A DNA stretch of 64,000 nt. Origin: Octopus sinensis (lineage: Eukaryota). The stretch covers positions 28,954,001-29,018,000 of the forward strand of contig NC_043001.1 in assembly GCF_006345805.1 (NCBI RefSeq), read 5' to 3'. This document shows, one piece after another, positions 21,150 through 60,010 of this stretch. Under the pieces are notes generated by a model. It made no database searches, was not told the origin of the DNA, and saw only the letters and a program-made list of their open reading frames with translations. Position 1 is the stretch's first letter, and every line of letters starts with the position of its first letter. Position numbers and translations under genes: made by a program.

Positions 21150-21249
21150 ATGTATGCCATGATGGCAACTCAAAGGTTTCCCTCCAGTTTTCTTCTAACT
21201 GGATTGATGGCATTTCTTCTACTGATGATTTCGAATGTGACATTTGCTG
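21150..21249 (+). CDS. Mesothelin/otoancorin/stereocilin-like protein, coding exon 1 (signal peptide)
   Basis: Encodes MYAMMATQRFPSSFLLTGLMAFLLLMISNVTFA (hydrophobic core, T-F-A cleavage-like end). Donor G|GTAAGT, phase 1. Acceptors at 21011 and 21148. Confidence 0.8.
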
Positions 21250-21624
21250 GTAAGTAACATATACGGTTCTCCATACGTCTTTGCTTAATAACATTTTTAT
21301 ATGGTCAGTTTTGTGTAACTCCTAGCCATTTTTGTTTTGTCCTGGTAATATCCTTCAGCGATTGCACATGTTGACTCACAATATTCTGATTTCGAAAGTC
21401 AAACTTTGCCTTTCATCTGAGATCAACGGTATCAATTAACCCCTATTCATCAAAATTACTGGCCTTGTGTCTAAACCATTGTTTGTTACTGTTGTTGTGA
21501 AGCTTATGAAGTCTTGCCAAAACCATGAACAGTCATAGTTGCAACGACTGACAGCAGATAATAATAATAATAATAATAATAATAATAATTATTATTATTA
21601 TTATTATTATTATTATTGTTATTG

Positions 21625-21810
21625 AGGTGGCGAGCAAGCTGAATCATTAGCAAGCTGGGCAAAATGCTTCGTGGTACTTCATCCATCTTTATGTTCTGAG
21701 TTCAAATACTACTGGGGATGATAAAATAAATACCAGTTGAGCACTGGGGTCGATGTAATCGACTTAACCCTTCCCTTAAAATGTCAGGCCTTCTGCCTAT
21801 AGTAGAAAAG
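21625..21810 (+). mobile_element. SINE family D, degenerate
   Basis: GAGGTGGCGAGC...TTCTGAGTTCAAAT...CACTGGGGTCGATGTAATCGAC. Confidence 0.7.
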
Positions 21811-21829
21811 ATTATTATTACTATTAATA

Positions 21830-22378
21830 TTGAGTGAGAGATTAGTGCATGCCATCAAAGTAACACCAGGGTAAATTATATGTAGCCCAGTATACCCATC
21901 ATGACTACCCGTCTGATAAGGGTATACCAGGCACATGCATCACAACCATATGTGCGTGACATGGTGATCTCATATCAAGATAAACAGTGCATGACCTTGC
22001 AGGAGGGGCCCAGTTAGAATTTTCTTCTAGTCAAGTAGCCCATCCCACTCAAAAGGTCCCTGAATAAAGATTGTTTAAGGATGTTGAAAGAACTACCCAT
22101 GTTTCCAAAGGTGAATCATCCAAACCTCCAAAAATTCCTTTCAACATACGGCCATGATGCTCTCCCACTACTTCTGCTCATGATCAGAGATGCACATATC
22201 GTCAGCCACTAAGGGTCATGCTCAACAGGTTATGGTCAAACAACTGACAAGCAAATCAGTGGATTGAGCAAAATATTTGCTGTAGCCCATCTTTTATACC
22301 AAGACAAAACAATGTACATGATAACACTTCCAGTCAGTTAAGATCAGAAGCCATGAGAGCCACTGCCTGGTACTGCAT
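21830..22378. repeat. Unclassified dispersed repeat of about 550 bp; second copy at 62365-62850
   Basis: High similarity between the two loci, and both abut (ATT)n tracts. Confidence 0.85.
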
Positions 22379-22414
22379 ATTATTATTATTATTATTATTA
22401 TTATTATTATCATT

Positions 22415-23240
22415 ATTTACTTTTGATCTGCATGCTTGTTACAATCACTTGCTGTGCTGAGACACATCCAGTGTCCTAGGGCGAGTGAAGGGTAAGAGAT
22501 GTTACAGTATGACTGAAATCTTGGCGAGGGTAAGTGATAGGGGCAGTAGAGAAATATCTTCATGTAATACTACACAGTCATTTAAATCAATAGGCTTTTT
22601 CTAATGATGTGGGCAGTACTTATCAGTATAATCTTTTGAATTTCTCTGAGACATGGTTCTCCTGGGATATTATCTAGATGTTTTTGACATCCCTTTTTTA
22701 TCATACCTAGGGTACCTACAATAACAGGAACAGTTCTCGCTTTAAGATGCCACATCTTTTGTATTTCAATTTTCAGGTCCTTACATTTACTTAATTTGTC
22801 AAATTCCTTTACAGTGGGAATACTTACATCTCTTGGACTACAAGTATTTTCTTCTCTGTCTTCAATGACTATGTCTGGTTGATTAGCTTGGATCGTTCTG
22901 TTGGTGTTGACTGGAAAATCCCAGAGGATAGTGACATTTTTGCCTTTAACGACTGGCTCAAGATGATGTTCATACCAGTAAGCAGGAGTGCTGATTTTGT
23001 AGTGTTTACATATTTTCCAATGAAAATACTGTCCTACTCTATCAGAGCAAGTTTTGTATTTGTTTGGTGTCAGCATAGGACATCCTGAGACAAGTTGGTC
23101 TATTGTTTCATCAAGCAAATTTCAAAATCTGCATTTAGGGTCAGAACCATTTTGAAGAACATTAGCCTGGTAGTTTTTGGTAAGCAAGCTTTGGTCTTGT
23201 GCTACTAATATGAAACCTTCAGTCTGTGCTTTCAGTCCTC
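22415..23240 (-). mobile_element. R4/Dong-clade non-LTR retrotransposon, 3' part
   Basis: Encodes ETIDQLVSGCPML...HWKICKHY...ILWDFPVNTNRTIQANQPDIVI...KLSKCKDLKIEIQKMW...VGTLG (CCHC plus PD..D RLE), with an (ATT)n tract at its 3' side. Confidence 0.88.
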
Positions 23241-23349
23241 TACTTCTCAGCCACTGATGGATTGTTGCTTGGTCTACATCAGCATTTCAGCTTTGAAATT
23301 AATGAGGAAGCTATGTGCCTGGAACAATCTGGAGAAAAATCACTAATGT

Positions 23350-23812
23350 CGATGACTGGCATCCATGCTAGTGGAGTGCTAAGTGCACCATCAGAGTGTG
23401 ATCGTTGCCAAAGCAGCTAACTGGCTTCCATGCCAGTGGCATGTAAGAAGCACCATTCGAGTGCAATCGTTACCAGTGTCACCTTACTGGCACTTGTGCT
23501 GGTGGCATGTGAAAAAACATTTGAGCAAGGTTGTTGCCAGTGCCGCTGGACTGGCTCCTGTGCAGGTGGCATGTAAAAACACCATTTGAGTGGCCGTTGC
23601 CAGTTCCACCTGACTGGCCCTCATGCCGGTGGCATGTAAAAGCACCCATTACACTCTGAGTGGTTGGCATTAGGAAGGGCATCCAGCTGTAGAAACTCTG
23701 CCAGATAAGATTGGAGCCTGGTGCAGCCATCTGGTTCGCCAGTCCTCAGTCAAATCATCCAACCCAAGCTAGCATGGAAAGCGGACATTAAACGATGATG
23801 ATGATGATGATG
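23350..23812 (+). mobile_element. SINE family C with about 4-5 tandem ~60-bp 5' units
   Basis: Repeated GGTGGCATGTAAAAAGCACC units, then the constant core and a (GAT)n tail. Confidence 0.88.
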
Positions 23813-57660: not shown

Positions 57661-57893
57661 TCATCATCATCATCATTTAGCGTCCGCTTTCCATGCTAGC
57701 ATGGGTTGGACGATTTGACTGAGGACTGGCGAACCTGATGGCTTGGAGTGGTTGGTGTTAGGAAGGGCATCCAGCTGTAGAAACTCTGCCAGATCAAGAC
57801 TGAAGCCTGGTGCAGCCATCTGGTTTGCCAGCCCTCAGTCAATCGTCCAACCCATGCTAGCATGGAAAGCGGACGTTAGACGATGATGATGAT
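57661..57893. mobile_element. SINE family C with an inverted duplicate of its own 3' end
   Basis: 57661-57740 is the reverse complement of 57812-57893. Confidence 0.85.
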
Positions 57894-58167
57894 TTGACAG
57901 ACTACTCTGAATGCTAAAGGGTTAACTTCACGGTAGTCCTGATCAAGTAGACCTATGACCATAGGGCTTTCTGACCATGACTATCCCATTTTATTTTACT
58001 TGAACTATATTATACAGTGAGAAAGCACAGGGCTTAGTGGTAAAAGTGTTAGGCTCTCAATTATTAGGTTGTGAATTTGATTCTTGGCCTTTGCTAAAAC
58101 ATAGTGTGCTTTAGCAAAGTACTTCAATTTTTGCTGTTCCCATGTGTTCAAATAAAAATTAATAATA

Positions 58168-58568
58168 GGCGCAGGAGTGGCTGTGTGGTATGTAGCTTGC
58201 TTACCAACCATATGGTTCTGGGTTCAGTCCCACTGCGTGGAACCTTGGGCAAGTGTCTTCTACTATAGCCTCGGGCCAACCAAAGCCTTGTGAGTGGATT
58301 TGGTAGATGGACACTGAAAGAAGCCCATCGTATATATGTATATATATATGTGTGTGTGTGTGTGTGTGTGTGTTTGTCCCTCCAGTATCACTTGACAACC
58401 GATGCTGGTGTGTTTACATCCCTGTAACTTAGCGATTCAGCAAAAGAGACCGATAGAACAAGTACTAGGCTTACAAAGAATAAGTCCTGGGGACGATTTC
58501 CTTGACTAAAGGTGGTGCTCCAGCATGGCCATAGACAAATGACTGAAACGAGTAAAAGAGTAAAGAGT
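58168..58568 (+). mobile_element. SINE family A, full length
   Basis: Head and tail as in the other copies. Confidence 0.9.
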
Positions 58569-58841
58569 AATGGGGAAGCTGGAGTAGGGATGTTAACCTT
58601 GGAGCAGACTGGCAGCCCATTCAAATAGGGTACTTTCAATTTAAATCTCTTCAGAAACCAGATTAGCTCTAACATCAAGGACTTGTAGATCAATAATAAA
58701 AAAACAAAAGAGAAAGAAAAATGCCATGTGTCCTTTCAGTTTTTATACACTAAAGTGTGATTCAAGGAGGATTTGACTTCTATTTCTAGCAGGCTGAGTG
58801 ACCATATAGAAATTCCTTCAGTGTAAGCGTACTATAGTTGA

Positions 58842-59062
58842 CCCTTTAGCATTCAAACCGGCCATATCCGGCCAAAATATTTAACCTGTTTTATATTGAA
58901 ACTGACCAGATCTCGCCTCTCACTTCAGCCCTGCCATGTCATTCTAAAACTAAAAAAATCACATCATTGAAATCTCTAAACTACAAGATAATGCAGGATT
59001 AATTCAAAGCAATATAAATAAACACATATCACATTTGACAGAATAATCTGAACACTAAAGGG
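58842..59062. mobile_element. piggyBac-type MITE of the 6990-7208 family
   Basis: TTGA|CCCTTTAG...CTAAAGGG|TTAA. Confidence 0.85.
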
Positions 59063-59334
59063 TTAAACCTAATTTTTCCACATCTTTTCTCATGACTAAT
59101 TACAGAAACTTATCTTTAAGATTTCAGACTTTTACTATTTACTTAGATTATTATTACCTCTGCCTTAGTGAAGGTGGAGGTATTGTTTCAGTCATGTTTG
59201 TTTGTCCATGGACAAGATATCTCAAAAACCGCTGGATGAATTTGGATGAAACTCTCAGGGATGTTTGGCCTTGTGACTGGCACAAACTTATTAGGTTCTG
59301 GAATTGATCCGGTACCGGTCAAAGATTCTGGATT

Positions 59335-59632
59335 CGTCATCATCATCATCATCGTTTAGCGTCTGCTTTCCATGCTGGCATGAGTTGGACGGTTCAACTG
59401 GGGTCTGGGAAGCCAGAAGGCTGCACCAGGCCCAGTCTGATCAGGCAATGTTTCTACGGCTGGATGCCCTTCCTAACGCCAACCACTCCATGAGTGTAGT
59501 GGGTGCTTTTTACGTGCCACCGGCACAGGTGCCAGACGACGCTGGCAAACGGCCACGATCGGATGGTGCTTTTTACGTGCCACTGGCACGGAGGCCAGGC
59601 GGAGCTGGCAACGGCCATGATCGGATGGTGCT
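59335..59632 (-). mobile_element. SINE family C
   Basis: (CAT)n followed by the reverse-complement core and tandem units. Confidence 0.88.
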
Positions 59633-59916
59633 AATTTTTGAGTGTAGTCAGGTTCATTTTTAGTATTCTCATTTGTGAGAGCAGTCGAGTTTATTTCAGA
59701 TATTCTCATTTTAAAAATCATCTCCAACTAATTGTTGAGAGGACGTTTGTGTTGCCCTGGCGGAAGGTTGCACTCTCTGAGTGCGTTTGTTTTATTTAAT
59801 TTGTTTTATTTATTATGGACACATAAAATCATAAAAATCACCTTTAGCTAAAAGATAAACACAACAAAAGATATTTCTTAAATTTTCATATGTTGCTGAC
59901 CTTTTTCAAATTTCAG

Positions 59917-60010
59917 GAATAGACTTTCAGATATGACAGCAGATCATCTGGAAAAAGTTGGTGTTTTTGTTGGATCATGGGACCCGAAAGATAGGAGAAA
60001 AATTCCAAGT
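59917..60010 (+). CDS. Coding exon 11 (last in window; no stop codon, gene continues)
   Basis: Acceptor CTTTTTCAAATTTCAG|, donor AGT|GTATGT, phase 2 to 0. Encodes (K)NRLSDMTADHLEKVGVFVGSWDPKDRRKIPS. Confidence 0.88.

Follow-up and report, generated by a model that had tools for sequence, protein, structure and literature searches.

Otoancorin and stereocilin are the products of deafness genes and, together with mesothelin, belong to a family that was defined in vertebrates and whose proteins are said to connect the cell surface with acellular gels of glycoprotein (PMC2628672). The mesothelin precursor is cleaved by furin into MPF and mesothelin, and it is anchored by glycosylphosphatidylinositol (GPI) (PMC2628672). 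Genes called 'otoancorin' or 'stereocilin' in Botryllus, Acanthaster, an octocoral and Mytilus indicated that the family is not confined to vertebrates, although none of them has been structurally characterised and none has been reported as a two-module protein of ~2,400 amino acids (aa). Here we analysed a stretch of 64,000 nucleotides of the Octopus sinensis contig NC_043001.1 (the window) and found that its positions 21150-60010, on the + strand, are the 5' quarter of LOC115212334, a gene homologous to vertebrate otoancorin and stereocilin. This identity and family we regard as close to certain, and the full explanation of the locus, with the putative mechanism given below, as likely (probability about 0.7).

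Among the described systems, otoancorin (OTOA, vertebrate inner ear) gave the best direct sequence relation to the octopus protein. The two share a signal peptide, a GPI-type C-terminus and a recurring motif of the form ...LG-x-L-x3-L-x3-[DE]-[IL].... The octopus protein differs from otoancorin in having twice the length (2,406 versus about 1,130 aa) and in carrying the C-terminal half of otoancorin twice, in two diverged module copies referred to below as A and B.

Gene identity, transcript and family

LOC115212334 is represented in RefSeq by a protein of 2,406 aa named "uncharacterized". This protein was mapped by exact peptide matching to the window and to 106 kb of DNA added downstream, and all its residues were placed in order, except for a few whose codons straddle exon junctions. 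The results showed that the coding region consists of 51 coding exons at 28,975,150-29,112,272 of NC_043001.1 (span 137,123 bp), starting at window position 21150. The downstream exons that the original prediction had proposed to look for were thus found, up to a TAA stop 94 kb past the window end, and its description of the gene as unannotated-looking had to be given up, since the locus is in RefSeq, though unnamed. The window carries 12 of the coding exons, which encode residues 1-558, and the exon after them starts at would-be position 65115, beyond the window:

21150..21249, + strand: coding exon 1, ATG and signal peptide, aa 1-33, ends ...NVTFA, donor GTAAGT; exact protein match
24852..25054, + strand: coding exon 2, aa 34-101, AG/GT sites; exact protein match
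27298..27416, + strand: coding exon 3, ends ...EKLLP plus 2 nt of a Tyr codon; exact protein match
28491..28569, + strand: coding exon 4, LVCFIEP...; exact protein match
37250..37285, + strand: coding micro-exon 5, 36 nt, aa 168-179, TKAILLKVNNEV; acceptor ...tttacag, donor gtaagt; exact match
41116..41415, + strand: coding exon 6 (the fifth of the original prediction), 100 aa, basic Pro/Arg/Ser-rich linker; exact match
45534..45677, + strand: coding exon 7, aa 280-327, module A; exact protein match
48610..48792, + strand: coding exon 8, aa 328-388, KRLGKLLSLLKPKDIITL unit, module A; single copy in the genome
50563..50672, + strand: coding exon 9, aa 389-424 plus 2 nt, module A; depth in all four runs
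52808..52931, + strand: coding exon 10, aa 425-466, module A; joined to exon 11 in a run X1 contig
55195..55376, + strand: coding exon 11, aa 467-527, SELGNLLNYVILRDIRSV unit; single copy in the genome
59917..60010, + strand: coding exon 12, aa 528-558, NRLSDMTADHLEKVGVFVGSWDPKDRRKIPS; exact protein match

The original prediction had joined eleven exons, in frame and with GT-AG sites, into a protein of about 550 aa with a signal peptide and no stop so far. All eleven are exact RefSeq exons (1,638 nt, 546 codons), their internal boundaries are all AG/GT, the phases chain without a stop, and every peptide quoted in it was found on the + strand at its place; its placing of the DNA in a probable cephalopod was also right. 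It missed the micro-exon at 37250-37285, whose 36 nt are a multiple of 3 and therefore leave the frame of the join unaffected, and the 546 codons are only part of a protein of 2,406 aa. Module A starts near the end of coding exon 6, at about aa 255. The repeated unit of this exon (...VTRR.SNR.FRT..P...) occurs in more tandem copies in Octopus bimaculoides, where the overlapping protein stretches 188-280, 274-363 and 338-416 all map to O. sinensis exon 6 and the orthologue is ~139 aa longer at this point.

With exon 48610-48792 as the phmmer query, one strong match was obtained (E 2.5e-23), the "uncharacterized protein" LOC106874393 of O. bimaculoides (2,400 aa), and searching with LOC106874393 then retrieved LOC115212334. 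A second match of the same exon was rejected as a low-complexity match to a sequence with retrotransposon-type Pfam domains. Orthologues are present in O. bimaculoides and O. vulgaris, with 81% and 98% identity to the O. sinensis protein, respectively, and the intact 2,406-codon frame is conserved in the three Octopus species. Searches of the own genome with four exons returned self matches only, so that the gene has no close paralogue, and distant ones may exist. The locus names of this gene were not found in any of the papers searched.

Splicing was seen directly in a contig of run X1 (4,825 letters), in which 52806-52929 was joined gap-free to 55193-55377 with 0 mismatches; given a 2-nt AG ambiguity, this is the 52931/55195 splice. 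An intron-less join at GT..AG borders is itself evidence that the run is RNA. Several runs gave depth in the exon bins, whereas no depth was seen in the unique intron sequence at 54484-55147. The contig places exon 52808-52931 ~1,480 nt from its start, and this offset fits 1,274 nt of upstream coding sequence plus ~206 nt of 5' untranslated region. These results demonstrated that splicing follows the gene model, at any rate at the 52931/55195 junction, the kind of exon joining by which the original prediction was to be checked.

Family membership was supported by two kinds of profile. The Pfam model Stereocilin (PF21058; curated gathering cut-off 26.6 bits) matched three O. bimaculoides isoforms with E 1e-14 to 1e-15 and 54.7-58.2 bits, in 5-6 stretches, and in the precomputed Pfam annotation the proteins of O. 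sinensis and O. vulgaris also carry PF21058.4. In addition, a hidden Markov model (HMM) built from 16 diverse vertebrate otoancorins was run with filters off on the three octopus proteins, with 200 shuffles and the reverse of LOC115212334 as controls. LOC115212334 scored 150.7 bits and the best control 2.0 bits. The score came from two domains: octopus residues 462-912 aligned to HMM positions 661-1092 (56.8 bits) and residues 2100-2377 to positions 809-1086 (109.2 bits). BLASTP against Polypterus otoancorin aligned residues 642-775 (E 3e-13) and 2118-2366 (E 5e-7), and phmmer linked the two proteins at E 9e-13. These results make the homology of LOC115212334 to the otoancorin/stereocilin family solid, as the original prediction of a member with a signal peptide had it, with otoancorin and stereocilin as its closest relatives by sequence comparison. 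The likeness to stereocilin (STRC), a large and secreted protein as the octopus one is predicted to be, is known through the Pfam model.

The relation to mesothelin itself runs only through the family (PMC2628672), because the Pfam model Mesothelin (PF06060), which the original prediction had named for the search, matched none of the octopus proteins, even at E 10, and because mesothelin chains in PDB were not reached by sequence. The PDB queries were the O. bimaculoides protein, the octopus alignment and one otoancorin, and their sole match was a designed helical repeat (E 0.001-0.05). The nearest language-model clusters of the octopus protein carry PF06060, and the nearest neighbour of its C-terminal module is a Mesothelin-bearing cluster whose commonest phylum is Arthropoda; we take both as leads only. 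An all-alpha superhelix of ARM-type repeats is likewise suggested by language-model neighbours only.

Several results weigh against this assignment. Pfam returned nothing relevant for seven single window exons, and with the otoancorin HMM run on each window exon alone, none did better than its 50 shuffled versions. Compared with otoancorins by hhalign, the N-terminal module half by itself gave a colinear alignment with E 0.013, which is marginal and unconvincing alone. A search by hmmscan with PF21058.3, up to E 10, produced no row for the O. sinensis or the O. vulgaris protein, for both of which PF21058.4 is precomputed; the miss is probably an effect of the HMMER speed filters. Neither phmmer nor the profile reached the PDB mesothelin chains, and run X1 is RNA by guess only. 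When PF21058 was run exon by exon against the own genome, noise only was seen (E above 2), because the exons are too short. The significant family signal as read from sequence lies almost wholly downstream of the window.

The window-encoded part is nevertheless tied to the family by three results. Domain 1 of the otoancorin HMM starts in exon 10 and reaches into window residues 462-558 (exons 10-12) with high posterior probability. In this alignment, SELGNLLNYVILRDIRSV lies on the otoancorin consensus DvDllGkllChlppeliraklsl, and MYKN-RLSDMTADHLEKVGVFVGSWDPKDRRKIPSE lies on the consensus lyGe-peeWtaeliqDlgplvtlls-keellvlae. The SELGNLLNYVILRDIRSV and NRLSDMTADHLEKVGVFVGSWDPKDRRKIP units, which the original prediction had listed among repeated helical units, likening the last of these to the mesothelin repeat, thus fall on conserved otoancorin motifs of the same pattern in the alignment. 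Moreover, a homologue of residues 261-557 lies further along the protein, at 1735-2031 (E 2e-14; 294 aligned columns with 26.5% identity, cysteines conserved), immediately ahead of the segment that is most like otoancorin. For the window-encoded part, taken from a 2,006-aa O. bimaculoides isoform, the language-model neighbours were all Mesothelin/Stereocilin/Otoancorin clusters (score 0.89, 187 shared features), again a lead only.

Module architecture

The protein contains two diverged copies of a ~650-residue module, A at about 255-915 and B at about 1730-2386, with 22.6% identity over 619 columns. The C-terminal half of each module matches the C-terminal half of otoancorin, and the window encodes the leader, the basic linker rich in Pro and Arg, and the first half of module A. 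An HMM of the module, run against aa 1-254 and 916-1729, detected no third copy. In contrast to vertebrate otoancorins, positions 1-660 of the otoancorin HMM have no significant match in the octopus protein. PF28491.1 (Otoancorin_N) is precomputed for nearly all vertebrate otoancorins, and the octopus proteins list only PF21058.4. We treat the octopus protein as a homologue of otoancorin, not as an established orthologue.

Modules A and B are parted by a spacer of ~800 residues, which holds an acidic, Asp-rich stretch with 38 Asp in aa 1432-1575. The longest coding exon of the gene (139 aa, aa 1435-1573) lies here, outside the window at ~29,073,999-29,074,415, and is of Asp/Gly/Ser/Asn/Lys-rich acidic low complexity. 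It could form a disordered linker or serve to bind cations.

The motif R-X-[KR]-R occurs exactly twice in the whole protein, as RIKR613 and RRKR2091. Each of them sits in the gappy stretch that links the N- and C-terminal halves of its module; the two are within 10 alignment columns of each other and are conserved in O. bimaculoides. The aligned otoancorin consensus, in contrast, has no such furin-type motif. A module would thus be made up of an N-terminal half, a basic convertase motif and a C-terminal half, with a putative GPI signal at the end of the last one, a layout that resembles the mesothelin precursor with its MPF, furin site, mesothelin and GPI anchor. This likeness is our inference from the sequence, and cleavage is read at the level of the motif; unlike mesothelin, the octopus protein has no PF06060 or PDB mesothelin match.

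The two ends of the protein have the features of a GPI-anchored surface protein. By inspection and a hydrophobicity scan, the N-terminus encoded by exon 1 is signal-peptide-like (M...R, a 14-residue hydrophobic core, then SNVTFA/D), as the original prediction had claimed. The C-terminus runs ...NNSDGSRSNVN, with small residues and a short spacer, followed by a hydrophobic tail of 14 residues to the stop. By rule-based inspection only, this looks like a GPI-attachment signal, the feature for which the original prediction had suggested a search. In the orthologue, the only strongly hydrophobic 19-mers are the signal peptide and the C-terminal tail. The protein has 42 N-glycosylation sequons and no internal membrane span.

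Other elements in the window

The introns in the window contain remnants of mobile elements. Decayed fragments of a mariner/Mos1-type transposase were found at 53539-54180 and 35530-35904, both on the - strand, with HTH_48 at E 2e-18 and 5e-9 and Transposase_1 at E 2e-10. An open reading frame (ORF) at 33504-33917 (+ strand) with zf-RVT at E 7e-6 looks like the remnant of a retrotransposon without long terminal repeats. Long imperfect microsatellites of the (TG/CA)n and (TATG) types lie in large introns at 38500-41060, 46390-46680 and 50118-50279, and they account for many spurious Cys/Val/Tyr/His/Thr-rich ORFs in the ORF list.

An interspersed repeat of ~400 bp lies at 52130-52660, where it begins with a 33-bp tandem array, and has at least 10 further copies. 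The copies are 84-88% alike and occur in either orientation. Other examples are:

7417-7755: ~400-bp repeat, example copy
18851-19258: ~400-bp repeat, example copy
26729-27129: ~400-bp repeat, example copy
34282-34697: ~400-bp repeat, example copy
47675-48081: ~400-bp repeat, example copy
58165-58570: ~400-bp repeat, example copy

The summed contig depth of this repeat was 1e5 to 4e6 in four runs, far above anything else. Scans of the window for tRNA and Rfam families were empty, the ~400-bp repeat included. It is probably an abundant, transcribed octopus element resembling short interspersed elements.

Possible functions

On the reading of LOC115212334 as an otoancorin/stereocilin homologue, its product would be secreted and heavily glycosylated, by analogy with the family (PMC2628672), and would be tethered through GPI to the outer leaflet of an apical membrane. 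A furin-type convertase might cut at both linkers, in the way that the mesothelin precursor gives MPF and mesothelin, and the long helical-repeat body would bind a glycoprotein-rich acellular matrix and so hold the matrix to the cell surface. We consider this mechanism, drawn from analogy, an evenly balanced proposition. What counts against the reading is that anchoring, cleavage and matrix binding are all inferred, from the signal peptide, the sequons, the lack of a transmembrane span, the GPI-type tail and the homology to gel-linking proteins.

There are rival readings of its role. A reproductive or general epithelial adhesion or extracellular-matrix protein, for example of the testis or the sperm surface, is a tentative possibility: in Botryllus, an otoancorin is raised 54-fold in fertile colonies and is expressed in the testes (PMC4523013), the testes of the crown-of-thorns starfish upregulate a secreted otoancorin (PMC9759900), and a larval 'stereocilin' of Mytilus is among cell-adhesion genes (PMC8696127). 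However, those invertebrate genes owe their names to the best BLAST hit, and they need not be orthologues of the octopus gene. That published invertebrate homologues come from testis and skeletal matrix, and not from mechanosensory organs, speaks against a protein that tethers the hair-cell bundles of the statocyst or the epidermal lines to the cupula or statolith, like otoancorin and stereocilin in vertebrates, and so does the fact that the papers on the cuttlefish statocyst endolymph proteome and the snail statocyst transcriptome mention no family member. The homology to otoancorin and stereocilin, the GPI-type anchor signal and the function described for the family (PMC2628672) would fit such a tether, and the Asp-rich stretch could, speculatively, bind the calcium of a mineralised statolith; we consider this role, toward which the original prediction had pointed, unlikely. 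The version in which a two-module, GPI-anchored protein fastens the hair-cell bundles of the octopus statocyst or epidermal line to the cupula or statolith, with the Asp-rich exon contacting the mineral, would be decidedly unlikely.

Very improbable in our view is a component of the organic matrix of a mineralised tissue (statolith, beak, radula or stylet). It would agree with the Asp/Gly/Ser/Asn-rich acidic exon and with an otoancorin-like protein in the sclerite organic-matrix proteome of an octocoral (bioRxiv 10.1101/2020.07.15.202069), but the latter is one proteomic mention in a cnidarian, and the acidic stretch makes up 6% of the protein and may be a mere disordered linker. Finally, the window exons alone, with no significant family signal of their own, would suit a different alpha-solenoid, a chance chain of open frames or a pseudogene. 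Against these stand 150.7 bits versus at most 2 bits in shuffles, a Pfam match above cut-off in the orthologue, a spliced transcript contig and an intact frame of 2,406 codons in three species. We find such an origin scarcely credible, and the spliced contig of run X1, the exact protein mapping and the otoancorin HMM score largely refute it.

The gene was already predicted in RefSeq for three Octopus species, unnamed and with the Stereocilin Pfam domain on record; what is new here is that the locus is explicitly assigned to the family and that its protein is seen to have two modules, a pair of convertase motifs and a GPI-type tail. The value of the finding is limited, since the gene is in RefSeq, invertebrate members had been noted before, and no result connects the gene with a sensory organ. 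An octopus homologue with a signal peptide and a GPI-type signal is nonetheless a candidate for the statocysts, the classic convergent hair-cell organs. If it did act there, hair-cell-to-gel attachment would be shared by cephalopods and vertebrates, through deep homology or through parallel recruitment of one family. For the family itself, the presence of two units like the mesothelin precursor suggests that a repeatable unit of ~650 residues may lie behind the vertebrate proteins, each a variation on it.

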